Source of the DNA: Hemiscyllium ocellatum
Lineage: Eukaryota
Assembly: GCF_020745735.1 (NCBI RefSeq)
Contig: NW_026867467.1
Coordinates: forward strand, 1,406,200 to 1,470,199
Direction: 5' to 3'
Length of the DNA stretch: 64,000 nucleotides
Position 1 is the stretch's first letter, and each line of letters starts with the position of its first letter. The notes under the pieces are model-generated. The model was not told the DNA's origin, did not search any database, and saw nothing but the letters and a program-made list of their open reading frames with translations. The position numbers and the translations under genes were made by a program. This document shows positions 5,262 through 62,700 of the stretch, one piece after another.

Positions 5262-8200
5262 ACAGAACATAGAACATGGAACATTACAGTGCAGTACAGG
5301 CCCTTTGGCCCTCGATGTGGCGAAGTGTAAAATCAACCTGAAACTCATCTCACCTTCACAATTCCATTTTCATCCATGTTTATCCAATGAACATTTAAAT
5401 GCCCTTAAAGTTGGTGAGTCTCCTACTGTTGCAGGCAGTGTGTTCCATGCCCCCTACTACATTCTGAGTAAAGAAACTATCCCTGAACATCTGTCCCATA
5501 TCTATCATTCCTCAATTTAAAGCTATGTCCCCTTATGTTAACCATCACCATTCAAGAAAAAAAGGATGCCCTCTGATTATCTAACCCTCTGATTATCTTA
5601 CAGACCTCAATTAAGTCACCTCTCAACTTTCTACTCTCTGTCAAAAACAGCCTCAAGTCCTTCAGCTTTTCCTCATAACACCTTCCCTTCATACCAGGTC
5701 ACATTCTAGTAAATCTCATCTGAACCCTTTCCAAAGCTTCGGTATCCTTCCTATAATGCAGTCACCGGAACTTTACGCAGTACTCCAAAACCAGAGTTTT
5801 GGACAGCTGCAACATGACCTCATGGCTCCGAAGATCAATCCCTCCACCAATAAAAGCTAATACACCATATGCTTTCTTAACAACCATATCACCCTGGGTG
5901 GAAACTTTCAGGGATCTATGTTTGGGGACACCGAGATCTCTCTGTTTATCTACACTGCCAAGAATCTTACCATTAACCCAGTACTCTGTATTCCTGTTCC
6001 TCCTTCCAAAGTGAATCACCTCACACTTTTCCACATTAAACTCCATTTGCCACTTCTCAGCCCAGCTGTGCAGCTTATCTATGTCCCTCTGTAACCTGCA
6101 ACATCCTTCGGCAATATCCACAACCCCACCTACCTTAGTGTCATCCGCAAATTTACTAACCCATCCTTCTATGCCCTCATCCAGTTCATTTATAAAAATG
6201 ACAAACAGAAATGGGCTCAAAACAGACCTTGCAGTACCCCACTAGTAACTGAACTCTAGCGTGAACATTTCCCATCAACCACCACCCTTTGTCTTCTTTC
6301 AGCTGGCCAATGTCTGATCCAAACTGTTAAATCACTGTCAATCCCATGCCTTCGTATTTTATGCAATAGTCTACCTTGGGGAACCTTATCAAACCCCTTA
6401 CTGAAATCCAAATGCACCACATCAACCACTTTACCCTCATCCAGCTGTTTGGTCACCTTCTCAAAGAACTCTATAAGGTTTGTGTGGCATGACCTACCCT
6501 TCACAAAACCATGTTGACTATCCCTAATCAACTTATTCCTTTCGAGCTGATTATAAATCCTATCTCTTTTAATCATTTCCAGCACTTTACCCACAACTGA
6601 AGTAAGGCTCACTTGGAGAAAATTACTAGGGTTGTCTCTACTCCCCTTCTTGTACAAGGGGACAATACTTGCTATCCTCCAGTCTCCTGGCACTATCCCT
6701 ATTGACAATGACAACATAAAGTTCAAAGCCAATGGCTGTGCACTCTCCTCCCTGGCTTCCCAGAGAATCCAAGGATAAATACCATCTGCCTTAAGAGACT
6801 TATTTATTTTCCTACTTTCCAGAATTGCTAACAACTCCTCTTTGCAAACCTCAATCCCATCTAGTCTAGTCACCTGCATCTCAGTATTCTCTGAGACAAC
6901 GTAGTCATTTTCCAATGCGAGTACATTGAAAAGAATTCAGTTAGCGCTTTTCCTATCTCCTCGGACTCCATGCATAACCTCCCACTACTGTCCTTGTTTG
7001 ACCCTAAACTCACTCTAGTCATTCTTTTATTCTTGATATACCTGTAGAAACCTTTAGGTTTTTCCTTGATCTGACCTGCCAATGACTTTTCACATCCCCT
7101 CCTGGCTCTTCTTAGCTCTTTCTTTAGGTCTTTCCTGGCTAACCTATAACTCTCAAACACTCTAACTGAGCCTTCACATCTCATCCTAACATATACCTTC
7201 TTCTTCCTCTTGACAAGAGATTCAACTTCTTTTGTGGACCACAACTCCCTTACTCAAACACTTCCTCCCTGCCTGACAGGTACATACTTATCAAGGACAC
7301 GCAGTAGCTGTTCCATGAATAAGCTCCACATTTCAATTGTGCCCATCCCCTGAAGTTTCCTTTCCCATCCTATGCATCCTAAATCTTTCCTAATTGCACC
7401 CTACTTGCAACAGTTATACCACTGCTATAACTCTTGCCCCTGGGATATACCTAACCCTTTCCATTGCTAAAATAAACACAACCAAATGTGGGCACTATCA
7501 CCAAATGCTCACTAACCTCTGAATCTAATACCTGGCTAGGTTCCTTACCCAGTACCAAATCCAATATGGTCTCGTCCATTGTTGGCCTGTCTACATACTG
7601 TGTCAGGAAAACTTTCTGCACACATTTGACAAAAACTGATCCATCTAAAGTACACGAACGATAGTATTTCCAGTCAATATTTGGAAAGTTAAAGACCCCC
7701 ATAACAACTACCCTGTTACTCTCGCTCCTATCCAGAATAATCTCTGCTCACCTATCCTCTCCACCTCTGGAACTATTTGGAGGCCAGCAGAAAAGTCCCA
7801 ACAAGGTGACATCTCCTTTCCTGTTTCTAAGCTCAGCCCATACTACCTTAGTAGACGAGTCCTCAAATGTACCTCCTGCCACTGTAGTACTGTCCTGACA
7901 AACAATGCCACACCTCCCACTCTTTTACCATCTTCTCTGTTCTTACTGAACCATCTAAATCCCGGAACGTGCTCAAACCATTCCTGTCCCTGCTCTATCC
8001 ATGTCTCCGAAATGGCCATAACATCGAAGTTCCTGGTACCAACCCATGCTGCAAGGTCACCCACCTTATTCAGGATGCTCCTGACACTTCAAACCACTTC
8101 TTGCATGCCAATGCACTCTTGCAACCTTGAAACCATATTTCTGACCTCACCACTCTCAACCACTTGGACGGTGGAACTACAGTTCAGGTTCCCATCCCCC

Positions 8201-9109: not shown

Positions 9110-9957
9110 TTACTTATTTTCAGGGGGAGAGGGTGGAGCAGAACTGTAAGTATATAACTAACTGACTGCGGGGATTCACGGCCTTGTTTTCAGGGACAGA
9201 GGGTGGAGCAGAGCTATAAATATATAACTAACTGACCTTGTTTTCAGAGGTGGAGGGTAACGCACAGCTAAAAGTAAATAACTAACTGACCGTGGGGATT
9301 CACGGCCTTGTTTTCAGGGGTGGAGGGTAAAGTACAGCTAACAGTAAATAACTAACTGACCACGGGGATTCACAACCTTGTTTTCAGGGATGGAGGGTAA
9401 CATACAGTTAAAAGTAAATAACTAACTGACCGTGGGGATTCACGGCCTTGTTTTCAGAGATGGAGGGTAACGCACAGCTAAAAGTATACAACTAACTGAC
9501 CGCGGGGATTCACGGCCTTGTTTTCAGGGATGGAGGGTAACATACAGTTAAACATAAATAACTAACTGACCCCGGGGATTCACGGCCTTGTTTTCAGGGG
9601 TGGAGGGTAAAGTACAGCTAAAAGTATATGACTAACTGACCGCGGGGATTCACGGCCTTGTTTTCAGGGATGGAGGGTAACATACAGCTAACAGTAAATA
9701 ACTAACTGACCCCGGGGATTCACAGCCTTGTTTTCAGGGATGGAGGGTAAAGTACAGCTAAAAGTAAATAACTAACTGACTGCGGGGATTCACGGTCTTG
9801 TTTTCAGGGGTGGAGGGTAATGCACAGCTAAAGGTATATAACTGACTGATTGCGGGGATTCACGGACATGTTTTCAGGTGTGGAGGGTAAAGTACAGCTA
9901 AAAGTAAATAACTAACTGACCGTGGGGATTCACGGCCTTGTTTTCAGGGGTGGAGGG
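9110..9957 (+). repeat. 70-bp tandem array, about 12 units
   Basis: ACTAACTGAC recurs at 9281, 9351, 9421 ... 9911 (period 70); the first two units are divergent. Confidence 0.97.
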
Positions 9958-11187
9958 TGTTATAAGTGACTTCTGTCTAGGTATTCTAAATTTCCGGAGA
10001 ATAGTCCCTGACACTCGGCTAACTACTCTACACTAGGGCTATGGTTCAGCTCAACTGGGTTCTGCCTCCACACTCTGCCGACCGCATACTGTCCTTTAAC
10101 CCTTGACTTCAAGGGAGACTGTCCACAAGGTCCCGTCCTAGGAGGCGAACTCCAAGCTGTCAGCACCAGCCCTTATCCCCTCCGGCTACCGCTTTTCCCG
10201 TGGCAAATCGAAATGCTGCGAGACACACAAATGGAGCAAAGGATGTTTATTCAAACTTGCAAGTTTGGACGTCTTCCAAAAGGACTTAGGAAGAATCGCG
10301 CGGAAGGGTTTTACAGCAGTAATATTTATACATTATTCTTACATTTGAAAACATTAGTGACAATTCCATTGGTTAAAACATTTCACGCTTTTCTCTGCCA
10401 ATTCTTTAATTAAATGTTATATTGTTTTTAACAATTCTGCTGGTTAAAGCATTTCTTGGTTATCTGCATGTCATAAAAGGGCTTCTATTGTATTTTGCCC
10501 TCTGTGTCTAGCTAAAGCATTCCTTGGTATCTTGCCCAAGGTTACCATGTTCCTGACATAACAGCGGTGACTTCTGGTTCATGTTCCCATATGGCCTAGT
10601 TGAATATCAGTCTCATAATTAGCCTTTACTCATTAAACCTCAGTTTTAGTACAGAAATTACCTTACACATANNNNNNNNNNNNNNNNNNNNNNNNNNNNN
10701 NNNNNNNNNNNNNNNNNNNNNNNNNNNNNNNNNNNNNNNNNNNNNNNNNNNNNNNNNNNNNNNNNNNNNNNNNNNNNNNNNNNNNNNNNNNNNNNNNNNN
10801 NNNNNNNNNNNNNNNNNNNNNNNNNNNNNNNNNNNNNNNNNNNNNNNNNNNNNNNNNNNNNNNNNNNNNNNNNNNNGTATGTGTGAGGTGTGTTTGTGTA
10901 TGAGGTGTGTGTGTGTGAGGTGTGGAGAGTGTTTGTGTGTGAGGTGTGTGTGTGTGAGGTGTGTGTGTGTGAAAGGTGTGTGTGTATGTGTGAGAGGTGT
11001 GTGTGTGTATGAGGNNNNNNNNNNNNNNNNNNNNNNNNNNNNNNNNNNNNNNNNNNNNNNNNNNNNNNNNNNNNNNNNNNNNNNNNNNNNNNNNNNNNNN
11101 NNNNNNNNNNNNNNNNNNNNNNNNNNNNNNNNNNNNNNNNNNNNNNNNNNNNNNNNNNNNNNNNNNNNNNNTACATTAACCATATCA
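9958..11187 (-). mobile_element. ERV 3' LTR (contains two assembly gaps)
   Basis: TGATAT...ATAACA termini; TATAAAT (~10330), R-like GCGCGATTCTTCC, AATAAA at 10251-10246; follows the PPT. Confidence 0.75.
10672..11171. other. Assembly gaps (N 10672-10876 and 11015-11171) flanking a TG-rich simple repeat (10877-11014)
   Basis: Seen directly. Confidence 0.99.
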
Positions 11188-14990: not shown

Positions 14991-16757
14991 AAAGCATCTC
15001 ATAAATGTGAGTATTAATATCCACTTTGGCAGATTTAATTGATTTTCATTGGAATGTATCTGCCAAACCTTTAGCAAAATTGAATCAGCAAACAGCTTCA
15101 AACTGTGCATACGTCCAACTCAAAACATTGCTGCTCCTCATTAACTTTTTCAAATGCACTGCTCCATTCCAAATAGCGGACCACCCGTTCCCATTCATAG
15201 AAATGTGTTTCTGACGGATGGAAGTGGTTGTTTCTGTACTTCTGCCATTTTTATTGAACTCATCTCAAGTTACACTTTAGAATTTGACTGTCAGGCCAAG
15301 ACTGTTTGTGTTAAGCTTTAACAATTTTGACCAGGTTGCCAGCTCTTCATGTTCTTGAATATTGGAATGGGACTGGGTTCTATCAGCCCTCTAGGGACAG
15401 GCTGCAAGGTCATTAGGTGGATAATAGGGTGGAAGATGATAAGGGAAGGAAGGAGTTTCCACCTCCGTAGTATGTTATTGATCCCAAATTCGGGAAAGGA
15501 TGACCACTCAGGTGGTCAATGTAGAGTGTGTTCCAGCCAATGCTGGCAGTTTATTAGCAGTAAGGTCCTCCATTGTGTGGGAGACCTCCCCCTGCATCCT
15601 AGTGACACACCTGGAGGATGTCCCTCCTAATGAAGTACCTTGTGGCTCACAACAGGGTATCCCATCTGCACACTGGAACAGTCTCCTGTCCATGGTGGCG
15701 ATCACTACGGGAACTGGAAATCAGAGTAAGTGGGTGAAAGAAGCCGTGAGGGCGAGAGTGTTCACAACATTCCCAGGACCAGGTTGGCAGCTCCTACTGA
15801 GGCCATTAATAAGTCATTAAGATCCCCCAATTGGTGCAAGGACGATGGGTTAGTCCTACTCCTAGTAAGAGGACTGTGATTCCTGCTGTTTCAGTGCTAT
15901 CAAGCAAATCGTGAAGTGTGGCCATGTGATAAAATCATTTACATTCAGTGCTGGATACTTGAGACTTTTTGTGAGAAACTTTATAACTCTTCTAAATGTT
16001 CTTAATGCACTTTTTGTTTCATGCAATGGTGATTTTCTACATAGGATTACAGAGGGAAAACAGACCATTTGGCACAATCAGTTTATGCCAGTGCTTATGT
16101 TCTACTCAAGGTGTTTCACATCTTTCCTCATCTAAATCGCCTGTTGCAATTCTCTATTCCCATCCCTTCCTAGTGCTCGCCTAGTTTCCTTGAAATACAT
16201 CTAAACTATTGATTTCAACTATTCCGTCTGGTCACATATTCCCCATTCTCATCATTCTTTCAGTGAAGAGGTTTCTTCTGAATTCCCTTTTGGACTTCTT
16301 GAGGTACCGTCTTATATTGACAGCCTCGAGTTATATTCTATCCCACAGTGAAATGTTTTCTTTGTACCTTCTCTTTTCAAAACCTTTCTTAATTTTCGAA
16401 CTGTCAGCCTTCTTTTCAAGAGAGAAGTGAACAGCACAACAATTCTTCCTGGATATACACAGCCAGAAACTTGTGGAGCTTTCTCATAAATCATCTCTTT
16501 ACTCTCTCTCATACATTCTATAATATGTCAACTCGAACTGCAAACAATACTCTTAATTATAGTCAACCAAATTTTTATAGTGACCCTACTTTCAAATCTA
16601 TCCCTTTAGAGATAAAACTTGGTACTTTGTTTGCATTTTTATGGCCTTTGGAACCTGTGGTGAAATTGTTAGTGACTGATGTAATTGTCTGAAATCCCTT
16701 TGTTTGTCTCCCTCACTTAGACGTGCATCTTTGAATAAGTGACCTGCACATTATTCC

Positions 16758-17445
16758 AAGGCCCCAAGGGATCCTTCCATATCCACCACAAATTCACCTG
16801 CACCTCCACACACATCATCTATTTCATCCGCTGCACCCGATATGGCCTCCTCTATATTGGGGAGACGGGCCACCTACTTGCGGAACATTTCAGAGAACAC
16901 CTCTGGGACACCGGACCAACCAACCCAACCACCCCGTGGCTCAACACTTTAACTCCCCCTCCCACTCCACCAAGGACATGCAGGTCCTTGGACTCCTCCA
17001 TCGCCAGACCATAACAACACGACGGTTGGAGGAAGAGCACCTCATTTTCCGCCTGGGAACCCTCCAACCACAAGGGATGAACTCAGATTTCTCCAGTTTC
17101 CTCATTTCCCCTCCCCCCACTTTGTCTCAGTCGAATCCCTCGAACTCAGCACCCCCTTCCTAACCTGCAATCTTCTTCCTAACCTCTCCGCCCCCACCCC
17201 ACTCCGGCCTATCACCCTCACCTTGACATCCTTCCACCTATCACATCTCCATCACCCCTCCCCCAAGTCCCTCCTCCCTACCTTTTATCTTAGCCTGCTG
17301 GACACACTTTCCTCATTCCTGATGAAGGGCTTATGCCCGAAACGTCGAATTTCCTGTTCCTTGGTTGCTGCCTGACCTGCTGCGCTTTTCCAGCAACACA
17401 TTTTCAGCTCTGATACTCCAGCATCTGCAGACCTCACTTTCGCCT
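16758..17445 (+). mobile_element. 5'-truncated Penelope-like element (GIY-YIG endonuclease region + terminal repeat)
   Basis: FTCTS..IIYFIRC...YIGETG motif; 13-bp TSD TGCACATTATTCC at 16745-16757 and 17446-17458. Confidence 0.88.
17315..17350 (+). ncRNA. Minimal type I hammerhead ribozyme motif
   Basis: ATTC-CTGATGA-A-GGGC-TTAT-GCCC-GAA-ACGT-C-GAAT: core, stem II, palindromic stem III, ATTC/GAAT stem I. Confidence 0.75.
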
Positions 17446-18034
17446 TGCACATTATTCCTACCAAGATGTAATACCTTACCTTTATCTGTGTGGATCTTCA
17501 TTTGCTAATTATTTGAACATACCGTAAATTAATTAATGATCTCTTGCAACTTCTTGTAGTCCTCAGAATTGGCTACATTTCAACATTCCTTTCCAATTTC
17601 ATGTCATTGTATTGCTAATTTTTTGTCGTAATTAGATGCAATATTTAATTTGCAGTTTTACTTTATTTTGTTTTGAATTTTTAGAGAGGTGCAGTAATCC
17701 ACACATTAACTACAACAACTAAATGTAGAATGACAGATAGATAAAAATTATTACAAACACTGGACTAATTAATAGACTCTATTAACTTCATGGTCAAAAC
17801 AGGGAATTATTTTTTACACGAATGATATGGTGCACTATCTGTAGTACAATAACTTTTTGTCCATTTTTTTGTTGTAGTTTATTTTTCAGGTCTTTCCATA
17901 CACACCATAAATTGAAAAGGCACCCATCCTCCATTTTAAACTAAATGATAATGAAAAAACAACATTTATATTAAATGCAACATGATTTATGAAGCCAATC
18001 CTCTAGGCTTATACATATTCACAGCCATGTAGAG

Positions 18035-21809: not shown

Positions 21810-21937
21810 CTTCACCAGAGTGACGGCAGCGCTGTAGAAAATACTCAGGAAGAACAAGGTGATGAACGTGGAAGCAGTTGTCCAGATGTTGCTGTTATCA
21901 TCCTCATAGTCTTCAATCCAAGTGCGTTCTATTGAAT
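21810..21937 (-). CDS. IGHM: IgM transmembrane exon TM1 (DSIERTWIEDYEDDNSNIWTTASTFITLFFLSIFYSAAVTLVK)
   Basis: TAG| acceptor in phase 1 with the Cmu4 internal donor; CART motif; AAG|GTGAGA donor. Confidence 0.96.
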
Positions 21938-22429
21938 CTATGAATATAAAGCCGAGAGAACGCATTTAGATCGTTTATTGATCCAGATCGATCTATGTGT
22001 ATCCAAGTCATGTAATTAGAGACCATTACATCTTCATAAAGCAGTCAGGTATTTCTCAAGTGTGACTCTTATCTGTATCCATCAGTGCATTATTGACTCT
22101 CAGCAAGAAATTACAAATACTGACTGCACATGTTCTTTCTTCATTGTCCATGTCAGAATGTTTTAAATTAATTTTCTTTTAATCTATTATTTAAGGATAT
22201 TATTATTTGAGGAATGCTTATTACGAATGATTATTTTAATTATATCATTATATTTTAAATATAGGCTGTGACAGCACTTTAGTTGAAAATTGTGGCCATC
22301 ACTGAATAAAAGTTCAAATGTGATTCTCACCTTTATGTATTGATGACCAATTGCTTGGCAAATCGTGAATATAAGTGACATCACAGTCAGGACATTGCTT
22401 CATATTTTTGTTTGTAGGATCTGTATATT

Positions 22430-24706: not shown

Positions 24707-25098
24707 TTATTGACATGAATTAACAGTGTCCATCAGTGCAAGTGAAATGTTTACGAAACTCGGTTTACCGCTGGATTTATCGACTGTTCTGTTGATGATC
24801 TTCAATGGAATCGCTTCATGTCCCACCACACAGGAGTAAGAAGCACCGCTGGCCCACTCCTCCGCTGTAATGGATAACAGGCTGTAGATGAAGAAGGAAG
24901 TGTTGTCACTCTCTGCCATCACCTCGGTGTTCTTGTAGTTACTGGGATTCACCGGCTTGTCATTGTTTGTCCACTTGACGAAGATCTCTCGGGGGGAGAA
25001 ACCTCTCACTAAACAGGTGAGGGAGAGAAACCTCTGTGCGGAGATTTCTTCTGTTGGTGGCAGGAGGACTGACACTGATGGCTCCAGCGGATTAATCA
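24707..25098 (-). CDS. IGHM: IgM Cmu4 exon plus secretory tailpiece (...[24 protein letters not shown]); internal donor for the membrane form after 24769
   Basis: CAG| acceptor at 25098; [11 protein letters not shown] motif; tailpiece with NIS glycosylation site and penultimate Cys; internal G|GTAAAC donor. Confidence 0.96.
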
Positions 25099-25545: not shown

Positions 25546-25854
25546 CTTTCTCCTTGTGGATGGAGTCTCTCAGCGGAGTCGGTAGATTTTGATGGTTCAC
25601 CACACATTCAAAAGTAACACCACTCAGCCAGGCTTCAGTAGAAATGTCTAATTTGCTGATCACGCTGTCGGGATTCTGTCCAGGCTGGTCAGCAATCTCT
25701 GAGCTCAGAGGCTTCTTATCTTGTTTCCAGGTCACGCTGACTCCAGGAAGAAAATTGGACACAACGCAGGTTAACGTCACCGTCGCTTCCAGTAAGACTT
25801 GTTCGATTGGCGGTGGGAGGATTTTAACGGTGTGAGGGTGGCACTCGGTATCTT
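25546..25854 (-). CDS. IGHM: IgM Cmu3 exon ([32 protein letters not shown]...[22 protein letters not shown])
   Basis: 309 nt, TAG| acceptor, |GTGAGC donor, phase 1/1, C1-set motifs. Confidence 0.95.
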
Positions 25855-27832: not shown

Positions 27833-28144
27833 CCTGGAGTGCGGTGATGTTTTTACTTTGAATGTTCTCTTCGTGAGTGACCTGGCAGGTATAGACTGCG
27901 CTGTTGTACCATTCACCATAAGGGACCATCAGCCGACTCGTCACCGAGAAGTTCCCGTTCGCCTCACACACGGGAGACGTGAAGAAGCCAGAATCCAAGC
28001 GTCGGCCATTTTTCAACCAAGTCACGTTGATTGCCTTCGGATGGAAATCGATGATTGAACAAACGACAGTTGCAAACTTGCTGCTTGCGATTTCTTCACT
28101 GGAGCTCACAGTTAGGAGAAGAGTTGGTGGGAGAGGACCTGTAC
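27833..28144 (-). CDS. IGHM: IgM Cmu2 exon ([43 protein letters not shown]...YTCQVTH...ITALQ)
   Basis: 312 nt, AAG| acceptor, |GTAAGA donor, phase 1/1, C1-set motifs; matches ORF 27768..28157. Confidence 0.95.
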
Positions 28145-31250: not shown

Positions 31251-31556
31251 CACATGGCATTTCTTTGCTCTTGTGTGACCCGCTGTGTTGAACCTCACAG
31301 TAGATTTTGCTGGGGCAATCTACCGCTGACCCGGGCAGGGTTAACTGGCTGCTCAGGGTGTAGGTTCCCTTCTTGTTTCTCACTGATGGGTAAGTCTTCA
31401 ATCCACCATTCGTGATTAGCACCCCACCTTTCTTCCAGGTTACCTTGGTGACGTCTGGGGAATAGTCCATCACCAAACAACCAAAGATTGTCGAACCGGT
31501 GCTGTGCTCCTCACAGGAGGAGACCAGGCCATAAAGCGTGGGGGGAGATGGTGTCT
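31251..31556 (-). CDS. IGHM: IgM Cmu1 exon ([18 protein letters not shown]...[17 protein letters not shown]...[18 protein letters not shown])
   Basis: 306 nt, TAG| acceptor, |GTACGT donor, phase 1/1, C1-set Cys-Trp-Cys pattern, typical shark Cmu1 N-terminus. Confidence 0.95.
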
Positions 31557-39288: not shown

Positions 39289-40900
39289 CTGGAGTTCATG
39301 AGTGGATTACTTTAATTAATTCGAAATTTGGTTGGTCACATAATTCACTATAGCAGTTGTTTCCTGAAGAATGACTCTTCAGTTGATATTTTGTTGTAAA
39401 ATGTAACTATTTATTTAAAATGCACAGATTGGGAACACCTAAAGCACTGTGCAGGTTAAATAATTCAGTTAATGTTTTATTTTTATCCTGCAAATCCAGT
39501 TTAATCAGGGACATAACAATTAATTAACTCAAGTTATATGTGAAACTGATCAAAGCAGTGAAACTGATCTGTTCTTCATAGAATTGAGCAGAATTTCCAA
39601 ATGGTCTTTGCCAATGATCTTTTCCAGCCAGAAAAATATGTATGTAGTGTACAGCGGAATTGAAAGGTGTTTCTTGATCAATTATAGCACAGTCATGGTA
39701 TTTTTGCTCAAGAGCAAGAACAATTAGAACATTCGACTTTTGAAATTCTATTTATATTTCTCTATGACTTGTAAACTGTTTAAAGACAGACCTTGTGATT
39801 GAACTAGATAGTTGAGTTTCGAATTTGGATTGTAAAGCATGGATTAGATTAATCCTTAATTATTTATTTTAAGTAAAAATAGCACCTGAAGGTATCTGTT
39901 TTCCCTTCATTTCTAAAACCTGTGCGATTTGCCTTTCACTTTATCATAGACTTTATGAAATTTTAACTCGCATGCTGATTGCATTGAATGAGGAAAGAGC
40001 AGTTCACTGTCACCAACCGTGTTAACATTGCAAAAACAATGTAGAAACCAGAAACGGTTTCCCAAATATAACACATTTAATGTTACCCAAGCACAGTCCC
40101 TCCTCAACAGATCAACGATCACCAGATCACAACACGGTATGTTTGCAGCAGAACTAGCTCTGCAAACATTTTCGACAGAACCAAGGACATGATGTCACCT
40201 CACAAATAAAACCAAATTGAAGTCTAACAAAGCTGCTCAGAATCAAGCAAACTAATGATTAAATTGAATAGAAATAACAGGTCATAATAGCAACCTTGTT
40301 TTGAGGGGACTTAACACTTAAAGCTGTAACGTTTCTGGCAATAGTTCAATTTATTTCTAACCTGCACACCCTTCCTGATCATGACAATCTTGTGCAGCGC
40401 ACAGTAGAGTGGGGTTGAAGGCATATATTGATTAATCACCTCATGGTCAAAACAAAATTACTGAATGGACAAATATTACCACATTATAATTTTAAGTTAG
40501 TTTCAATTACGTGATCTGATCAATTCTGCAGTTTCAGATTTAGGTCCCAAATTTTATTTTGAATGAGGCTACTCAAAACAAAATTCAGTTCGTTTACAAT
40601 TAGAACGGAGTTTTTTTTAAAAGTCAATCCATTAAAAACTCGTTTTTTTTCATTTCTCACACATCTGGGTTTCTGCCTTAAGTTGTTTTTCAGACCGTTA
40701 CAAATGGATGTCCTGTTTTCAATCAAGCAGAGAAAAATATGTCATATAAGTTTAACAAATGCAGAAATGATTCATGAAAAACAAAAGAACTTCACAAATA
40801 TTGGTAATGAAAAGTATTCCAGAGAGTCAATCTCCTCACCAGAAAGAAAACTTCGATTCAGAAAGCATGAAAACGCAGATCAATTTCACAAACTGAATAA

Positions 40901-41185
40901 GAATCCAATCAACTCAATTCAACAGAATCAAGGAAAATAAAATCAGAATCCAATCAACTCAAAACAACAGATTTGAATGAAACATAATCAGAATCCAACC
41001 AATTCAATTCAACAGAATCAAATAAAACAATTTCAAAAGTCAATCAACACAATTCAACAAAACCAAGTAAAAACAAAGTCAGAATCCAATCAACACAGTT
41101 CAACCCGAATCAACTAAAACAAAGCCAAAATCCAATCAACTCAATTCAACAGTAAAACAAACTCCGAATCTAATCAACAGAATGC
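40901..41185. repeat. Degenerate ~45-bp tandem repeat in the J-Cmu1 intron (~7 units)
   Basis: GAATCCAATCAACTCAATTCAACAG-like units start at ~40901, 40946, 40991, 41036, 41082, 41128, 41166. Confidence 0.8.
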
Positions 41186-41696
41186 AATATAGCACCGCAA
41201 GAAACTTTGATGACAGTTTCTAACCTGCTTGTCATCAACAAAATTAACAAAATAAATGAGAAAATATAATCATGGTAAGAACATATATTCAAGAAATGAA
41301 TAATGATATTTTAGCATATTTTAGTCATGTTTGGTAATATCTTGAACATCTATGAATTCGTAGCATTTGTTGTTGATAATAAAACTCACAGTCAGGGTGT
41401 CACTGACATTAAACATTATTTATAGCTGACTGATTAAGAGACATTAGGTGTTTCAAGTAACCCAGCCACATAGAATGTCCATCTGATCAAAAAAAAGAGA
41501 TACACTGAGCAAATGACTCCATCATCACCATTTTAACTATTTGCTGAGCCTTAACTGAAGTCTATAATCAGTCTGAACAAAAATCAATCCGAACCAAACC
41601 AAACTCAGCACAGAATCTGAGTTTCATTTAATTCAGAAATTAGTCACATGAATAGAAAGTTTTTAAAAAGTCACTAAGAATGTTCAAAGTTCTTAC

Positions 41697-41755
41697 CTGA
41701 AGTCACTGTCACCATGGTCCCTTGGCCCCAGTAATCAAGATAGTACCAGCTATAT
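41697..41755 (-). CDS. IGHJ: D-like sequence fused to JH (YSWYYLDYWGQGTMVTVTS)
   Basis: WGQG motif, TMVTVTS end, phase-1 donor TCAG|GTAAG; ATATAGCTGGT lies between the heptamer and the J-like ACTATCTTGATTACTGG. Confidence 0.92.
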
Positions 41756-41783
41756 CACTGTGAGACACGTTGTGTCAAATACT
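41756..41783 (+). promoter_or_regulatory. Recombination signal sequence, 12-nt spacer, 5' of the D+JH segment
   Basis: Read away from the coding end: CACTGTG + AGACACGTTGTG (12 nt) + TCAAATACT (6/9 nonamer); no plausible nonamer at 22-23 nt spacing. Confidence 0.8.
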
Positions 41784-42086
41784 ATGACAGACTGTAAACT
41801 GTAAAATGCAAATAATTTCTTCACTTCCTAGAAAGCAGTGATTCAGACTCCTCTAAAAATGATTTGGTGCATTATTTCAGCTTTTACTATTCATTGTATT
41901 TTGAAAGCTTGGAATACTTTTCCAGGTTTGGTCTGCATTTAACTTGACAATCAACACGAAGAAGGTAGAAAACAATTATACATTTGTACAAACTAGCACG
42001 ACTGGATTGTGTTTAAATTGCATCTCACATTATTTCTCGCTCCTGCCACGGTAGAAATCACCAATTTGAGATAAATCCTTGTCAGT

Positions 42087-42124
42087 GGTTATTGTATGAG
42101 GATGTCGCTGTGCACAGCATTGTG
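42087..42124 (-). promoter_or_regulatory. Recombination signal sequence, 22-nt spacer, 3' of VH
   Basis: CACAATG + 22 nt + ACAATAACC (consensus CACAGTG / ACAAAAACC). Confidence 0.92.
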
Positions 42125-42430
42125 ACCCACTTGCACAGTAATAGATGGCGGTGTCTTCGATCTTCAGGTTAGTCATCTCCAACGCGAAAATGTTCTTTGA
42201 AGTGTCTTTGGACGCACTAAATCGACCCTTAATCGCTGGTGCATAGTTATTGCTGGATGAACTATAGTAGCTAACCAGCCACTCCAGACCCTGGCCGGGA
42301 ACCTGGCGGACCCAGCTCATGTAGCTGCTGCTGAGATCGAACCCGCTGGTTTTACAGGTCAGTTTCAGGCTGCCTGAGGGACGGCCAGTCTCTGCCTCTG
42401 GCTGGGTCAAAACAACCTCCGACTGGACAC
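42125..42430 (-). CDS. IGHV: Shark IgM VH exon ([49 protein letters not shown]...[11 protein letters not shown])
   Basis: Acceptor AAAG|GT at 42430; canonical V-domain Cys, WVRQ, GLEW and YYC motifs; open frame; followed directly by an RSS. Confidence 0.97.
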
Positions 42431-42535
42431 CTTTAAAAAAGACAAGAAATAAACCATGAGCATTACTTTTACATTCCTGAGGTAGACTAACATTGAGACA
42501 GCAACAAAGACAGACTTAAACAAAAAAACACTCAC

Positions 42536-42584
42536 ATGATAAGAAAGTCAGTAATAAACTGAGAAAAATTGTCGACACAATCAT
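42536..42584 (-). CDS. IGHV: IgM heavy chain leader exon (MIVSTIFLSLLLTFLS + 1 nt)
   Basis: ATG at 42584, hydrophobic signal peptide, phase-1 donor T|GTGAGT that joins in frame to the V exon ([10 protein letters not shown]). Confidence 0.93.
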
Positions 42585-42670
42585 TCTGATAACTTCTGGG
42601 AAGCGGTTCTGTCAAGATCTTTCTAAACAAAGCCGACCCAGGAGTGTTGAATTACGGTCCAGTGCCTAGG

Positions 42671-42677
42671 ATTTATA
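42671..42677 (-). promoter_or_regulatory. VH promoter TATA box; GGAA (Ets-type) cores just upstream (~42705-42728)
   Basis: TATAAAT about 87 nt upstream of the ATG; GGCGGAAG and CAGGAAAC on the sense strand; no ATGCAAAT octamer seen in the proximal promoter. Confidence 0.6.
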
Positions 42678-42949
42678 TGGCTATCGGAAAGGGCAGGCTC
42701 ACAGCTTCCGCCTGTTGGTTTCCTGCTGGAGACTGAGACTGGATCCTGGTCTCAGCTTGCACAGCCCCAACACATGGGCGCATGTCTTTACGAGGTTATG
42801 CTTAAACATGGATATATACACATCTTGGGATATTTATTTTGCTGAATAGCTTCTTTGGGAGTTTTTTTTTAAATGGTGGAAGTAAAATTGAGTACCTTCA
42901 GGTCTATTTCACATGATAGTTGCAAGTATTTTGTTTTAAAATAAATTCA

Positions 42950-43405
42950 TTCGGAAGTTAGCTCCCTTTATTTCTACATTCATTCACAAACAGATAAAAC
43001 TAAAATCGAAGTTCAAACGTATTACTAGCTAGGAAAACAATTGAGTTTTTTTTTCCAGGACACTGCCAGTCTCTGTCCCACTACAAAATAACATGTAATT
43101 CATACTAAACATTTCAAAATTCAATTTAGGCAACTGAATACAGAGCGTGTCCAAAGTGATTATATTCAGAATATTCAATTAGAAGTTAACTCCCTTTAAT
43201 TCTACATTCCACCACAAGCAGATAAAGCTAAAAAGAACTTCAATCATATTATTAACCAACAAAATGAGTGACTTTATTTTTGCTGTCACTCAACGTCTCT
43301 CTCACTTTACAAAATAACATCCCATGTCTAATCTGCGTTTCTAAATTCCATTTAGGCAACCTAATATGGAGCAGGACTAAAGTGATTATGTTCAGAATGT
43401 GAGTG
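42950..43405. repeat. Diverged tandem duplication (~229-bp period) upstream of the VH promoter
   Basis: AAGTTA.CTCCCTTTA..TCTACATTC at 42955 and 43184; TTTAGGCAAC and AAAGTGATTAT.TTCAGAAT also repeated. Confidence 0.8.
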
Positions 43406-44554
43406 GATATCACGAACCAGTTTGGACCCGGAGATTAGAAGCACCTCCTGACATTGCAGAATGTCTCTCCTTGCATCTTTTTTTTCAAATTTTTTAAAAT
43501 GCATAGTAAAGGAAAGCTGTGTGCCTGAGAAACAAAAAGTGAGTTGGCAGTGATACATAACACCTAGGTAAACTTTTGAAAGAGCATCTAATGAACTAGA
43601 ACAGGACAGTCCATACTTTTTTTAAAAAAATCCTCAACATCTAAACCATTGCAGGTAACTGTCTGGGTACATCAGGAGTGTTTGGTTAAATTAGAGAGTA
43701 TTACAATAATCATTACCACGAATGTAGGTTATAAACAGTACATTTCTCTGCTCACTGATAGCTCTGACAGGGGTAGTTAACTCGTAAAAATAAGCAGAAA
43801 TTCGCTGTTACACGACACCAGTGTTAACCATGTATAAAGGGCCCACTCAGTTTTAATGAGATAAATGAATCAGAGAATGGTGTACCAAGTGATGTGAGTT
43901 TGAACCAATTCAAGTTTGTTAATTTACTTTGAGATGATAACAAATGTTACTGCAATGTGGGATTTTGGATCCATTAACTTCATATTCAGGAGCTTTAAAG
44001 ATACTCAATAAACAGGCTGAACTAACCAGAATGTCACTGCATTCAATGTCCTGTTTCTGATAGTCATACAGTGAATGCTGTATTCAGTGACTTTCCTTTT
44101 TAAAGAAGAAATGCCAAGTGAAATGTATCCATTGTGATTAAATGGGAAAATATAGTTTGTTTGGTATGATTTTACTTTAGTTGATTCATTTTCCCTTTAA
44201 TCGGCCAGATACAATAGTTGGCAGCAATTAAGCTGACTGCAGAAAAGGTCCTTGAGTTTCCAGGTTCATTTACTGGAAGCAGGTGGAGTTTCTGCAGGGG
44301 ATCAAAGATATTTTGTCTCAGTGTTGACCAGTTGGTGGAAAGCAAACTGCAGACCATAACCACTGCCTCTGCAGAAACAAATCTACTCAGCAACAATACT
44401 GGAGAAAAGTTTATTTTTCAGTTTTGAAACTTGGAGAACTAGTCACTCCTCTCATTGAAGGAAATATTCGCAGAGTCTCAGACACAACCTAAACATCAAC
44501 AGTTCATTCGAGGATCACTACAGCACTGTTTAATATTGAGAAAAATTGATAAAT

Positions 44555-47667: not shown

Positions 47668-48204
47668 GCATACAGTGGACAACATCACAATTTGCTGTAA
47701 CATGAAACTCGCAACCACTGTGAACCATCGCCTGATGGTTCAGAATTTAACAAGGACCTAGCAAGGTTCGTGGAATGGACCGACGAGTGATACATGAAAA
47801 TTAACAAAGGCATTTCTGAAATGATTAATTTAGCTAGGAAGAATGTAGAGACTTCACATCTCTGTTTGCATTTCAATATACTATAAATTACTTTTCTATT
47901 ATATCCTAAAATACTCGAGTCTTTGTTCATATTTAATACACTCTATCTTGTTCCGGGGTTAAGATAGTTTCTTTATTTATTTCACTCAAGACTGGATGCT
48001 GTACTTTTGCCTCAGTATTGACCAAACTCGGTTTGGTGCCAGCTTATATCACTTGAGCTGCTTTTTCAGGAAGTGAATCTCTCCACCTGTTAAGTCAAAA
48101 TAATCTGTTCATGCTTAGATTGAAATAAATCCTATTAATATCATCCCAAATTCAGACTCGGTTATTTTGTATTTATTCATTGGAATTGAACAGGAATATG
48201 ACCG

Positions 48205-49241
48205 GCTGTTCTTGGTGGAGTGGGAGGGGGAGTTAAAGTGTTCAGCCACGGGGCCGTGGGGTTGGTTGGCACGGGTGTCCCAGAGATGTTCTCTGAAATG
48301 ATCCGCAAGTTAGTGTCCTGTCTCCCTGATGCAGAGGAGACCACATCAGGTGGAACAGACACAGTGGATGACATTTGTGGAAGTATAGATAAGTTTCTGT
48401 GGGATGTGGAAGGATCATTTGGGGCCTTGTCGGAGGTGAGGGGGAGGTGTGGGCGCAGGTTTTGCACTTCCTGTGGTGACAGGGGAAGGTGACAGGGGTG
48501 GGGAGTGGGCTGGTGGGGGGCATGGACCTGACGAGGGAGTCGTGGAGGGAATGGTGTCTCCGGAATGCAGATAGGTGTAGGGAGGGAAATATACCCCGAG
48601 TGATGGGGTCTGTTTACAGTGGTGGAAGCAGCAGAGGATGATATGATGTATGCAAGGTTGGTGCGGTGGAAGATGAGGACCAGGAGGGGTCCCTGTTGCG
48701 ATTGGAGGGATGGGGTTCAAGGGCATCATCGACCACGTGGGAGGGGAAATTGCATTCTTTGATAAAGGATCTGGGATGTTTTATGGTGGAACTGGTCCTC
48801 CTGGGAGCAGATGCGGTGGAGGCAGAGGAATTGAGAATAAAGGATGGCATTTTTACCTGAGGTCGGGTGGGAGGAGGTGTAGTCCAGGTAGCTGTGGGAG
48901 TCAGTGGGCTTGTAGTAAATGTTTAGTTGGTCACTGGAGATAGAGATGGAGAGGTCTAGGAAAGGGAGGGAGGTGTCCGAGATGGTCCCTGTAAAGTTTA
49001 GGTCAGGGTGGAAGGTTTTAGTAAAGTTGATGAACTGTTCAACCTCCTAGTGGTTGCATGAGGTGGCATTGATACAGTCATCAATGTAGCGGTGGTAAAG
49101 GTGGGCAATGATACCGGTGTAGCTGTGGAAGATTGACTGTTCCACATATCTGACGAAGAGGCAGGCATAGCTGGGGTCCATGGCTACCCCTTTGGTTTGG
49201 AGGAAGTGGGAGGATTGAAAGGAAATGTAGTTGAGGTTGAG
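48205..49241 (-). mobile_element. Decayed Penelope-like element (RT + GIY-YIG)
   Basis: QTKGVAM..SYACLF and YIDD RT motifs; downstream part similar to 16758-17000. Confidence 0.85.
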
Positions 49242-51793
49242 CATGTACTGCTTGGGTTGGCGTGACAGGAAGAAACTGAGGGCTTCGAGGCCTCCATCAT
49301 GGCGTTTGGATGTGTACAGGGCCTGGACATTCTGTTCATTCTGGGGCTTATCAATAGCTTGCAGTTATTATGGAACTGCAAGGGCAGTGGCTGGGAACTC
49401 GGAGAAACCAATGGTTCAGTCTTCTGCTTGAAGCAAATTTTGACCAGAACATTTAAACACCACAAAGCTCACTGTAGGAAATGCCAGTGCTGCAACTTGT
49501 AATAATATTTGAAACTTGGTTAAAAATAGGAATTTTTAGTTATAGTTTCTGAAATAATCAAGACAAGAATTAACTGTTAGAACAAGCTCTATCAAAGAGA
49601 GAAGATTTGCAAGGTTTGAAACCACACAGTGCTGTGGTTTATTTGAATTCAATGTTGGTCAGATTTAGATACAGCCAAGGTGATCTCTCCATATATTGAT
49701 TCTGTTAATCGGACACACCAACATACCTGTCTGTACTAAACTGTATTATTTGTTTAGTTGATCAAAATTTAGGAAATAGATCAAACAGAATGTATTTGGG
49801 TGGGAAGGTGATGGATACAGAAGACAGAATCAAAAGCTGGGAACATTAAATCTGAAGAGAGAGTAACAAGTAGTACAAGATCAAAGACATGGAAAGGTGC
49901 ATGTCAATGTGTTCCAGACGTTAGTGAATCGAATGAGCTTGTTAGATAGTCGAGAGACTCGTCCAACGACATCCTGGAATCAGACCGTGAAATAGAGATC
50001 GAAAGGTCGATTTGCAAATGTCACTTCAATGTGATCACTTCACACTCTGTGTCCTGATCTAGGCCACATTGGCAGATGTTTCTGCCAGATTGTATCCCCT
50101 GGGTTTATTTTCTGATCAGAAGTGAGATGTGTGGCTTGCTGCTGGCACATAGAAACAGGAAGTTGCGCGCCAGCTGAGAATGATACATCAGGCGCTACTT
50201 TCCGTATTATCAGCACAAACAGTCTTCCTACCTCTGAGGGTGAACACACTGACAGTGTCAAGAACAAACGGACAGTTTGCTGTTGGTCTCAACATTGTAT
50301 TCAATTCCATTCCCATTTTCCAGAATGAAGCAGAAGAGATTATTTCAGCTAGAGTAAATTATCTGTCAGAGAGATAAGAAGAGTTATCATCGGGTGAAAG
50401 GAGCGAAATGACAATATGTAGTTTCGCTCATAAACCTATGTTTAAAAGTAGAAAGCTTGAGGGAAGGTAATAAATAAATCTAAGAGACAGCATTCATTAA
50501 AAGTTGGAATTGTAACATTTAAGCAATAAAATTCAGCAGGGCTTTGGTGGAAGTGAGACCATCTGGGAAGTGGTTGATTCTGTTTTCCGCAGAGGCAATG
50601 AGATGTGCCATCGGGTGTAAAAAGTGGATGTGATGCTTCTTGACTTCAATCAGGTTTTTGACCAGATCTTGCATCTTCAATATACTAAGGGTTCATGGGA
50701 TCTGGTGCAGTTTGGCAAATGCATCGAAGGTTTATTTGTTGGCAGAAGGTAATGGTCGAAGGTAGTCATTGTGAAGACATCTTGTGTCCAGTGGCTTACT
50801 ATACGACTTGGTGCTGGATCCTTTGCTGTTTGCAGCGTATATGAACGATCTAGTCAAGAATGTAGCAATTTTGATCAGTAAGTTCAAAGATGAGGTGAAA
50901 AACGTTTGGTTTTGCAATTAATGAGGAGGAAAGCCAGTGTGACATCGATGACCTTGCCTGTTGGAGAGAAGAATTGAAAACAGAACATTATATCCTAAAG
51001 TCTGTGAAGTAAAGCATTTTCAAGACTAACAAATGAAGTGAATATACGATGCATTGTTGGAATCTACAAATACAAAGGATAAGCGATCTTCTGTTGTGCA
51101 TATCCACATCATGGAGTGTGGGTTGGAGTTATAGTCTGGAGATATTGTGGCTCGACCATTACTTTAGGAAACTGGGGTCTGAGCCTGCAGTGCTGCCACA
51201 TCAAGTCATGAACTAAAGTTGATAATTAAACAACTCATTGAAGGAATAAGCTCCACAGATATCCCCTTGCTCTGCTTTGGAGAGCACAACACATCAGCGC
51301 AAAAGTTAAGGTTGAAGCATTCACAGCAATCGTCAGCCAGAAGTGCCAATTGTCTGATCCATCTCGGCATCTTCTATAGATCACCAATATTACAGATACC
51401 TGTCTTCAGGGAATTCGCTTCTCTCCATGTGAAATCAAGGCACTGTTGGGCGGGGGGCACTGGTTACTGCAAATGCTATGGAGCCTGACAAAATTCTGGC
51501 AATAATACTGCTGACTTGTGCTAGCCAAGCACTCCCAGTACAGCTACAATACTGGCATGGACAATGTGGAAAATAGGCCAGGCATGTCCTGTGCACAGAA
51601 AATAGGTCAAACCACCGTGGCGAATTACTGCTCCATCAGTCCATGCTCAATCATGAGTTAGGTGTAGGAAGGTGCTTTCAACAGTGCTATCAAGCAGCAC
51701 TAGCTCAGTAATAACCTGCTCAGTGACATAAAATGTGGGTTACGCAAGGCCTACTCAGCTCATGACTGAATTACAGACTTGATTTAAACATGG

Positions 51794-58905: not shown

Positions 58906-60148
58906 AGTTTGGGTTCATGAAAGGCAGGTCATGTTTAACTGATTAATTGGAATTCTTTGAGGTCATAATGAGCGTGGTAGACAATGGGGAACTGGTGAAC
59001 GTGGTGTATCTGGATTTCCAAATGGCATTCAGCAAGGTGCTGCACAAAAGGCTGCTGCATAAGATAAAGATGCACAGTGTTACAGGCAATGCATTAGCAT
59101 GGACAGAAAACTGGCTAACTAACAGAATGCAAAACATGGGGATAAATGGGTGTTTTTCTGGTTGGCAATCAGTGGCGAGTGGTGTGTCTCAGGGATGAGT
59201 GTTGGGACTGCAATTGTTTACAATTCAGGTCGATTGCTTCGAGTTAGAGATCCAAGTGTAGTGTGTTGTAGTTCGCAGAAGGCACTTAAATGAGTGATAG
59301 AGCAAAGTGTGCAGGAGGATATAGACAGGTTAAGTGAGTGGGCAAGAGTCTGGCAGATGGAGTACAATGTTAGTAAACGTGAGGTCATCCATTTTGGGAG
59401 GAATAATAACAAACAGAATGCTGCTGTGCAGGGGGACTTGGCTGTTCTTGTGCATGAAACACAAAAGTATAGTTTGCAAGTACAGTAGCTAATTAGGAAG
59501 ACAAATGGAATAGTGTCCTTCATTGGCAGTGGATAGAGTTTAAAATTAGGACTTTCTGCTGCAGCTGTATAGGGCGCTGGTGTGACCATGCCTGGAGTAC
59601 TCTGTACACTTTTCATCACCTTACATGAGATGGCATTGGGGTGGGGTTTGCTGAGGAGGTTGATTATGTTGATTCTGGAAATGAGGGGGTTGGCTTGTGA
59701 GGAGAGATTGAGCAGACTGGGATTATACTCATTGGAATTCAGAACAATGTGGGAGGGGGGTTGTAAAATTATAAATGGGATAGATAAGACAGAAGCAGGG
59801 AGGCTATTTCCACTGGTGGGTGAAATTAGAACGACGGGGCATAACCTCAAAATAAGGGCAACAGATTTAGGACTGAGTTGAGGATCAACATCTTCACCCA
59901 AAGGGTTGTGAAGCTGTGGAATCCCCTGCCTAGTGAAGCAGCTGAGGCCAACCTGTTGAATGTTTTAAAGGTAAAATAGATTTTTTAACAGTAAAGGAAT
60001 GGAGGGTTATAGTGAGCGGGTGGGTAAGTGGAATCTTAGTCCATTGAAAGATGATCCATGATGATATTGAAAGGCAGAGCAGACTCGTGGGGTCAGATGG
60101 CCTACTCCTGATCGTATTTCTAATGTTTGGATGTTGTTATGTTCTAAC
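58905..60148 (+). mobile_element. Decayed CR1-type LINE RT/3' part
   Basis: VVYLDFQMAFSKV and GVSQG motifs, C-terminal similarity. Confidence 0.85.
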
Positions 60149-60289
60149 AGGCCTCCAATCCAAAACGTAATGCTCTCTGACTACTAAGTAAAAACTGAAA
60201 GAGCAGTGGATGCTGTGTATCAGAAACAAAAACGGAAACTGCTGGAAATGTTCAGAAGGTCTGGCAGCATCTCTGGCGTGAAAGGCTCA

Positions 60290-62700
60290 CCAGTTTATGG
60301 TTCCCTGGCTTTTCCATACAACTTTCTTCAATAATGCTGCCACATTAGTCACTCTCCAGTCTTCTGGCATCTCATCTATGATTATCGATGATACAAATAT
60401 CTCAGCAAGGGGTCCACGAATCTCTTCCCTAGCTTCCCACAAAGTTCTGAGAAATACCTAATCAGCTCTCCAGGATTTATTTCCATTTTTTACTTTAAGA
60501 CCCCCAACACCTCCTCTTCTGTAAGATGAACTCATTTGATCTTTAAGGGCTGTATTCTCTTCTTAGTTATTCTTTTAACCTTAAAATAATTTTAGAATCT
60601 TTTCGGATTCTCCTTAATTCTATTTGCCATGCAATTTCATGCCCCCTTTTTTCCCTCATGATTTCCTGGTGAAGTATACTCCGACTGCCCTTACACCCTT
60701 CTCAGGATTCACTCAATCCCAGCTGTCTATATCTGATGAATGCCCCCTTCGTTTTCTGGACAGGAGTTGCAATTTCCCTCATCATTGAGCTTTTCCCATG
60801 CCTTGCCCTTCACACAAACAGAAACATACCATCACTGAACTCTCATTGTCTCATTCTTAAAGGCCTCCCACTTGTCAGTCGTCCCTTTACCTGTGAATAA
60901 CCTCCCCCAACCAACTTCTCAAAGTCTAATACCATCAAAACTGGCCACACTCCAATTTGAAACTTTCATTTTTAAATCAATTCTATCCTTTCTCATCATT
61001 ATTATTAAACAATAGAATTATGATCACTTTCCCTGAAGCGTGCCCCTACAGACACCTCAGTCACTTGTCCTGCCTTGATTCCCAACAGAAGGTCAAGTAT
61101 TGCGAACTGTCCAGTAGGTCCATCCACATATTGAATAACAATGTTTTCTTGTACAGACTTAACCAATTTCTCCACATTCCAAGATCTTAACACTACCCCA
61201 AACTCTGGTTGGAAAGTTAAAATTCCCTACCATTATCCTCTTTCCTTACAGATAGCATAATCGCTTGTAATTTTCCCACTGACTATTAGGAGGCCCATTT
61301 TACAATCCCAGCAAGGTCATCACCTCTTTCTTATTTTTAAGTTTCATCCATATAACTTCACTGGGCAGTCTCCAAGAAATATCCTCTCTACATCCAGCTG
61401 TAATGTTCTTTCTAACCAAGAACACTCCTCCATCTCCTCTCTTGCTCCTCTGTCTATCCATTCTATAACATCTGTATCCTGGAACATTAAGTTGTCAGTC
61501 CTGTTCATCCCTGAGCCACATTTCTGTAATGGTAATGTTATCCTTGTCCCACATTCCCATCTATGCCCTATGTTCATCTGTCTCACATGTCAGGCCTCTT
61601 CCATCGAAGTAAATGCAGTTTAACGTTCTTGCTTTGCTCTTGCCAAACTGTTGTCTGCCTTGACCCCGAGAATTGCTCACAGCATCTCACCTCAAACACT
61701 TCTCTTTTCTCACTATCTTGTTAGTTCCCACCATCCACCTTACTAATTTAAAACCTTCAGCATACTGCTAGCAAATTTCCCCACAAGAATATCGGTCCCC
61801 TTCCAAGTCAGGTCCCTCTTATATAGGTCATTTCTATCCCTGAAGAGATCCCAGTGATTGAAAAATGGGAATCCTAACCCCTGCAGCAGTTCCTCAGCTA
61901 CACATTCGCTGCTCTATCTGACTGTTCCTAATCTCAATATTCCATTAGTTTTTAAACAAACCCCAACATGACATTTGCCATCTTTATTGACAGTTGAAAT
62001 TAAAAGCTAACTTTTTGTGGTTCGGAGATGCAGACTCCCTGTAGATTTCTGAATTCAATCTCTACCTTGCCTGTTAAAATGCACAAGTTCACTGTTTATG
62101 TCTGTTCTCATTTATTTAATCCACATTACATTAATGTGCAAAACTCCTTGTTCACTCCCATCCTATCTGTATCGCTCCGCAAACTTCTTTTTGTGTCATA
62201 CTCACCACTTGTCTCCGCTCCAATTTTTGTGTCATTCGCAAACTTGCCTACAATATACTCACTTTCCTCATCTAAGTCATCAAAATACTTTGTAAATTTT
62301 TTTGTCCCCCAGAACAGATTTATGTGGTCCTCCACACTTTGACATCCTGTAAAATAAAACACTTAATCAAACTTTTCGGATTGGGATTTCAAAAATCCTC
62401 TCTCCACGTTAATACAGTACCTCCAAAGCCAAGGCTCCTTTCTTATTCAGTAATCTTATGCATGGGTGCTATCAAACACCTTCAGAAAATCAAAACATAT
62501 TACAATCACCGTTTCCTCCATTTTCTCCAAGAATTCCAATACATTTATCAGGCAAGATTTCCATTTTGTAAAGCCATTCCCAGTTTTCTGCTGGAACATC
62601 CTTTTTTAAAGACTCCACCATTTTTTTCAATAAATGATGTTAAACTAAGTAGCCTCAGTCAATCTTTTGTGTGCCTTAACTTTTTATGAGTGAAGGTGTT
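60290..62700 (-). mobile_element. Decayed CR1-type LINE fragments
   Basis: APE-like QYVDGPTGQFAILDLLLG and RT-like KFANDTKIG segments. Confidence 0.7.

Follow-up and report, generated by a model that had tools for sequence, protein, structure and literature searches.

The 64-kb stretch of DNA analysed here (the window) carries on its minus strand one IgM minicluster, made up of a split leader, a VH, a J, four Cmu exons, a secretory tail and a TM1 exon. This cluster is very probably a partly joined VD1-D2J minicluster that descends from a V-D1-D2-J ancestor through two inherited joins of the V(D)J type. V is fused to a D1 remnant that retains the D1 3' RSS, D2 is fused to J and retains its 5' 12-RSS, the V-D1 DNA, the D2-J DNA and four RSSs are gone, and the DNA between D1 and D2 is kept. 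The architecture can be read directly, each piece has an identified homolog, and the exons and splice sites are intact. A split leader and a V-set exon akin to shark IgM VH, followed on the same strand by one J, four C1-set exons, a Cys-bearing secretory tail and a TM exon, place the cluster among the IgM miniclusters. The whole 64-kb window holds one V end and one J motif.

All features of the cluster given below lie on the minus strand. Leader exon 1 (42536-42584) was read directly, with the ATG at 42584-42582 and a gtgagt donor at 42535; the leader MIVSTIFLSLLLTFLS matches that of Chiloscyllium punctatum P0001. A leader intron of 105 bp separates it from VH exon 2 (42130-42430), which comprises the end of the leader and V through TGT GCA AG and matches the Pfam V-set domain (E 2.6e-17). 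Taken together with the D1 remnant, the V exon (42430-42125) ends TGT GCA AGT GGG T, and its stop-free translation is that of a typical shark VH with the end YYCASG. The D1 remnant itself is TGGGT (42125-42129), an intact D1 3' end. Directly behind it lies an RSS assigned as the D1 3' RSS by flank identity (42087-42124), with the heptamer CACAATG at 42124-42118, a 22-nt spacer at 42117-42096 and the nonamer ACAATAACC at 42095-42087. The D1-D2 intervening DNA (41784-42086) was recognised by blastn against unrearranged C. punctatum clusters and in a MAFFT alignment (A1). It is followed by the D2 5' RSS (41756-41783), also assigned by flank identity, with the nonamer AGTATTTGA at 41783-41775, a 12-nt spacer at 41774-41763 and the heptamer CACAGTG at 41762-41756. 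The D-like stretch ATATAGCTGGT (41755-41745) adjoins this heptamer and runs uninterrupted into the J sequence ACTATCTTGATTAC TGG GGC CAA GGG; it consists of the D2 remnant ATATAGCTGG plus one T. JH (41697-41744) is untrimmed and in frame with D2, has its Trp codon at 41730-41728 and ends in TCA G at 41697, followed by gtaaga with the donor gt at 41696. In the J frame the fused D2-J reads YSWYYLDYWGQG. An in-frame TGA stands directly before the D2-J coding DNA, which excludes a D-mu-like open frame.

To look for further signals, we scanned 41600-42250 with a relaxed RSS definition (a CAC heptamer with at least 5/7 matches, a nonamer with at least 6/9 matches, and spacers of 11-13 or 21-24 nt). 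The scan returned two sites, the D1 3' RSS and the D2 5' RSS, and revealed no further RSS or hidden D in the 355-bp D1-D2 spacer. The preliminary description, made from this DNA by itself, had noted between VH and JH only two RSSs, with 22- and 12-nt spacers, no free D, no 22/23-RSS on JH, and a D-like stretch fused in open frame to JH; all of this was borne out. Across the 64-kb window, 77 loose RSS-like motifs occur, compared with about 40 in shuffles. Since loose motifs are this common, motif counts alone prove little, and the support for the two RSSs comes from homology. The D1-D2 spacer also contains a perfect octamer, ATTTGCAT (41806-41813, minus strand), 44 bp upstream of the D2 heptamer. 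No other perfect octamer occurs within 41000-44000, and the bamboo-shark paralogs have ATCTGCAT at that site.

The constant region begins after a J-to-Cmu1 intron of about 10.1 kb. Cmu1 (31251-31556) is an open frame with an ag acceptor, a gtacgt donor and a Pfam C1-set match (E 9.7e-15); Cmu2 (27833-28144) and Cmu3 (25546-25854) are likewise open with splice sites (C1-set E 7.9e-19 and 5.2e-14); and Cmu4 with the secretory tail and then a stop (24707-25098) is open as well (C1-set E 2.2e-22). The secretory tail that closes the Cmu4 exon is of the mu type and has a Cys as its penultimate residue. TM1 (...NIWTTASTFITLFFLSIFYSAAVTLVK; 21810-21937) was located by a motif scan and its splice sites; the site of the nurse-shark membrane primer mem1 lies at 21921-21938 and differs from the primer at 3 positions. 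Three nurse-shark primers in all match the window, each with 1-3 mismatches, so the DNA is probably not that of nurse shark. Acceptors and donors of the Cmu exons are normal and all phases match, in agreement, as far as TM1, with the earlier remark that all C, secretory and TM exons are intact. The V protein is 88% identical to C. punctatum chiPu_0018445, 79-82% to Scyliorhinus torazame, 77% to horn shark HV01 (HV01_HETFR) and 72% to a whale shark VH, and no database protein was nearer to it than 88%; the cluster is accordingly that of an orectolobiform shark near the bamboo sharks. This V has SSSYMS as CDR1 and YYSSSSNN as CDR2. The window also holds some repetitive DNA. About 550 bp beyond J, the J-Cmu intron contains a 45-bp AT-rich tandem repeat of 5.7 copies (40896-41152), which four C. 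punctatum clusters (L001-L004) have in the same position. A 70-bp tandem array of 10.3 copies with 88% matches occupies 9236-9958. GC skew is strong at 6001-8000 (-0.41), 16001-18000 (-0.32), 48001-50000 (+0.35) and 60001-62000 (-0.30).

The assignment of each segment rests on comparison with the bamboo shark C. punctatum. Our reference set was the DNA around five of its VH genes (L001-L005), two of which, L001 and L004, are unrearranged. Both belong to the same subfamily as the window cluster, with about 90% identity across the whole 8 kb. In L004, V with a 23-spacer RSS is followed by D1 (ATGCGACAGCGGGT) between a 12-RSS and a 22-RSS, then by D2 (ATATAACTGGGGTGA) between a 12-RSS and a second 12-RSS (CACTGCA-12-ACAAAAACC), and finally by a 23-RSS and J (ACTATCTTGATTAC...). 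L001 has V, D1 (ATACTACAGTGGGT), the start of D2 (ATATAGCTG) and J as in L004. Three blocks of the window align with L001 by blastn: the V block (42862-42130 with L001 3720-4479, 88.8%), the block from the D1 end through its 3' RSS, the D1-D2 DNA and the D2 5' RSS to the D2 start (42131-41747 with L001 4919-5304, 93.3%, E 1e-164), and the J and intron block (41744-41500 with L001 5505-5749, 96.7%). The same D1-D2 block matches L004 4841-5213 at 91.2%. What the window lacks is any counterpart of L001 4480-4918, which holds the V RSS, the V-D1 DNA, the D1 5' RSS and the 5' part of D1, and of L001 5305-5504, which holds the D2-J DNA and the J RSS. Both gaps fall exactly at RSS borders, and L004 and alignment A1 agree. 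No match to the excised V-D1 or D2-J pieces, as would be left by reinsertion, was found elsewhere in the 64-kb window.

Neither reference cluster is undamaged. Comparison of L001 5296-5330 with L004 5204-5410 indicates that L001 is without the D2 3' end, its 12-RSS and about 190 bp beyond; a D2-to-J join is thus impossible there as assembled, and the loss could be genuine or stem from a mistake in the draft assembly. In L004 the V heptamer (4480-4487) is dead, with CGCAGCG in place of CACAGTG, and the V exon has a 1-nt frameshift; this cluster is a pseudogene that retains the complete V-D1-D2-J layout. This damage leaves the segment assignment unaffected. Identity to the window is 89-93% for L001 and L004, and 86-92% between the two. 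They are as distant from the window as from each other and therefore look like paralogs, and no orthologous locus with which to date the two joins was found among the C. punctatum loci compared. Homology extends upstream of V, where window 43627-42877 is 84-92% identical to L001. In this upstream region a 226-bp unit occurs twice (42954-43398, 75% identity), at least 370 bp upstream of the V start codon, and the duplication is common to L001, L002 and L004. Two of the stretches with strong GC skew share sequence with L005: L005 5503-5973 aligns with window 48224-48690, and the first 200 bp of this piece align a second time, inverted, with 16961-16758, suggestive of a dispersed repeat.

The spacers alone, 22 nt after V and 12 nt before the fused D-J, would also fit an unjoined V facing a pre-joined D1-D2-J (V-DDJ), as the preliminary description had pointed out. 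A further layout to consider is a V facing a native single D joined to J (V-DJ). The flanks decide against both. The sequence 3' of V matches the D1 3' RSS flank at 54/60 positions in L001 and 55/60 in L004, as opposed to 24/60 and 21/60 for the V RSS flank. Likewise, the sequence 5' of the fused D-J matches the D2 5' RSS flank at 59/60 positions in both L001 and L004, and the D1 5' flank and the J RSS flank at 14-18/60 and 25-28/60, respectively. The RSS behind the window V has a 22-nt spacer, the length of the D1 3' RSS, and the spacer of the L001 V RSS is 23 nt. The 355-bp window spacer is itself D1-D2 intervening DNA, with 93% identity to L001. Moreover, the V end diverges from its paralog TGTGCAAGAGAC exactly at the start of the D1 end TGGGT, which adjoins the homologous 22-RSS in L001 and L004. 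The nurse-shark primer 'RSS-D1', which detects sequence 3' of D1 in that species (PMC2435157), has a single match in the window (42094-42111, 3 mismatches, 0.01 expected by chance), and this match falls inside the spacer stretch of the 22-RSS 3' of the D1 remnant. Taken together, a V-DDJ or V-DJ layout is hardly credible: what V carries is not its own 23-RSS facing a D1 5' 12-RSS. The earlier suspicion, drawn from the likeness of AGTGGGT to a D1 3' end, that V is pre-joined to D1 has thus been upheld, and its preference for VD1-D2J over V-DDJ is settled by the C. punctatum comparison, as is the origin of the spacer, for which it had called for alignment to unrearranged clusters.

Three other configurations were considered and rejected. 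A fully joined VDJ of the IgM1gj kind is ruled out, as 369 bp with two RSSs separate the coding blocks. The presence on native J segments of a 12-RSS with the ATATAGCTGGT extension, named at the outset as the finding that would overturn the reading, is also ruled out, since all five bamboo-shark J segments compared have a 23-RSS at the J start; in each of them the CACTGTG of the 23-spacer RSS stands directly at ACTATC or ACGACC. Finally, a cDNA retro-copy is excluded by the presence of the leader intron and of the D1-D2 spacer.

With unrearranged paralogs as close as about 90% identity at hand, both junctions can be resolved to single bases. At the V-D1 junction the paralog V ends in TGTGCAAGAGAC and the window V in TGTGCAAG, which is followed by TGGGT, the last 5 nt of L001 D1 ATACTACAGTGGGT. 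The window V end is therefore short by about 4 nt, or by 2 nt if the junctional AG (42131-42130) comes from D1; this AG could stem from V or from D1, and either fits. D1 lost 7-9 nt at its 5' side and kept its 3' end TGGGT intact, and the junction is explained without any added base. At the D2-J junction, ATATAGCTGG (the corresponding D2 of L004 being ATATAACTGGGGTGA) is followed by a T and then by J from its exact germline first base: over the 36 nt compared, the window J equals the germline J of L004 from the first base after CACTGTG. The extra T may be a variant D2 end, a 1-nt P nucleotide of the untrimmed J (T|A) or an added base. Judged by their sequence, both junctions look like ordinary coding joints, with V trimmed, J untrimmed, at most one extra base and no remnant of an RSS.

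Somatic VD-DJ intermediates have been documented in nurse shark, in B cells as well as thymocytes (PMC2435157), and the joins in the window might likewise have arisen in two steps in lymphocyte DNA; alternatively, the layout might be a collapse of the assembly. We consider either origin improbable. A consensus assembly represents the majority of cells, of which a single lymphocyte clone is a tiny fraction, and the near absence of added bases at both junctions (at most one, and no N nucleotides) would fit joints made without TdT better than those of adult lymphocytes. An assembly collapse would not give deletions that end exactly at heptamer borders. In addition, an independent assembly, that of C. 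punctatum, contains three partly joined clusters (L002, L003 and L005). In these three of the five C. punctatum clusters the configuration is VDD-J (L002 5669-6100, L003 4444-4900, L005 4447-4900): fused V, D1 and D2 are followed by CACTGCA-12-ACAAAAAC(A/C), or ACAAAAGCC in L003, then by about 400 bp of D2-J DNA and a J with a 23-RSS.

An inherited VD1-D2J layout has precedents. Germline IgH configurations of cartilaginous fish include 'VD-J, VD-DJ' and 'VDJ' (reviewed in PMC5192425), and horn shark and skates are long known to have IgH clusters joined in part or completely, according to the reports cited in PMC2193156, where joined genes are ascribed to RAG activity in germ cells; the occurrence of germline-joined Ig genes in cartilaginous fish, mentioned in the preliminary description, is thus already in the literature. 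The window cluster shares with the joined IgM clusters of horn shark and skates the minicluster layout, the fused segments, the loss of inter-segment RSSs and DNA, the remaining RSSs in place and the leader intron. It differs from them in being another cluster of another species and in having junctions that can be assigned base by base, a task described as difficult for horn shark H-chain genes (PMC2193156). The somatic '2R' VD-DJ of nurse shark (PMC2435157) resembles it in the joined V-D1 and D2-J and in the D1-D2 spacer with a 22/12 pair, but arises in single somatic cells and usually with N additions, whereas the window VD-DJ comes from an assembled genome and is explained without N nucleotides. 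IgM1gj of nurse shark, as presented in PMC5192425, is similarly a pre-joined IgM heavy-chain gene with a restricted binding site; it is fully joined, does without RAG and carries three C domains, in contrast to the one RAG step left and the four C exons of the window cluster. The NS4 VJ light-chain genes of nurse shark (PMC2193156) are comparable in that germ-cell RAG joints were inferred and recognised via split paralogs, but they have a single join and no D, whereas in the window heavy chain two of three joins are made. As for related species, our literature search turned up one paper on pre-joined D segments in the IgNAR clusters of bamboo shark, and nothing on how the IgM clusters of bamboo or epaulette sharks are configured. 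Separately, the whale shark (Rhincodon typus) gene model P0009 reads through YYCARDWGGSLHYWGQETMVTVT and, at the protein level, looks like a fully germline-joined VDJ. The phenomenon is long known in sharks and skates, and the window cluster is a fresh, clean example that leaves the known picture unchanged.

The course of events leading to the VD1-D2J cluster can be proposed as follows. An ordinary V-D1-D2-J cluster would have undergone two coding joints of the V(D)J type, which were then inherited. The V-to-D1 join would have taken out the V 23-RSS, the V-D1 DNA, the D1 5' 12-RSS and the 5' part of D1 (7-9 nt); the D2-to-J join would have taken out the last few D2 bases, the D2 3' 12-RSS, the D2-J DNA and the J 23-RSS. 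Left between the fused blocks would be the D1 3' 22-RSS, the D1-D2 intervening DNA and the D2 5' 12-RSS. We infer RAG action in germ-line cells as the source of both joins. The 22/12 pair that remains is the legal pair of the ordinary D1-to-D2 step, so that one RAG join would suffice, and the two RSSs stand in deletional orientation. A single deletional join excising 369 bp (42124-41756) would complete the VDDJ exon. With 10 nt on the V side and 25 nt on the DJ side, 35 nt lie between the Cys and Trp codons; a blunt join is thus out of frame, and +1 or -2 nt at the junction restores the frame, as had been pointed out from the start. About a third of the joins would be in frame. The resulting CDR3 would be largely fixed, approximately ASG-x-YSWYYLDY with 11-12 residues, and variable around one position at one junction.

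The remaining RSS pair may be competent. The 22-RSS heptamer (CACAATG) deviates from consensus, as does the 12-RSS nonamer (6/9); the 12-RSS is base-for-base the same as in the C. punctatum paralogs, and the 22-RSS retains CAC and 8/9 of its nonamer. The gene, in turn, may be transcribed and used. It is also quite conceivable, at somewhat below an even chance, that the layout is real and inherited and the cluster a silent relic, whose intact exons merely reflect its recent origin. The pN/pS of the V exon against its paralogs is 0.57-0.71, which says little for or against constraint, and two sister clusters in C. punctatum are damaged, L004 by a frameshift and a dead heptamer and L001 by the absence of the D2 3' RSS. 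A relic is harder to reconcile with the seven exons (leader, V, four C1-set exons with the tail, and TM1), about 1.8 kb of coding sequence, that are open with good splice sites, with the conservation of the two RSSs just described, and with the V-upstream DNA (43627-42877) being 84-92% identical to L001. The stronger claim, that the cluster is a maintained and expressed 'one-join' IgM gene with a CDR3 nearly fixed in the germline, and one example among the many partly joined states that bamboo-shark-like genomes would contain, strikes us as tentative and rather unlikely.

Germline-joined antibody genes are the main evidence for RAG action in shark germ cells, and they are candidates for innate-like antibodies of fixed specificity. 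Among them, the VD1-D2J cluster of the window is unusually clean, in that every base of its junctions can be assigned and its remaining RSS pair and mapped exons are intact. It is therefore suited to testing whether half-joined heavy-chain genes are used and how far their repertoire is restricted. Should the cluster prove to be a maintained, expressed 'one-join' gene among many partly joined ones, this would suggest frequent, possibly ongoing RAG activity in the germ cells of the lineage, and selection for semi-innate heavy chains.
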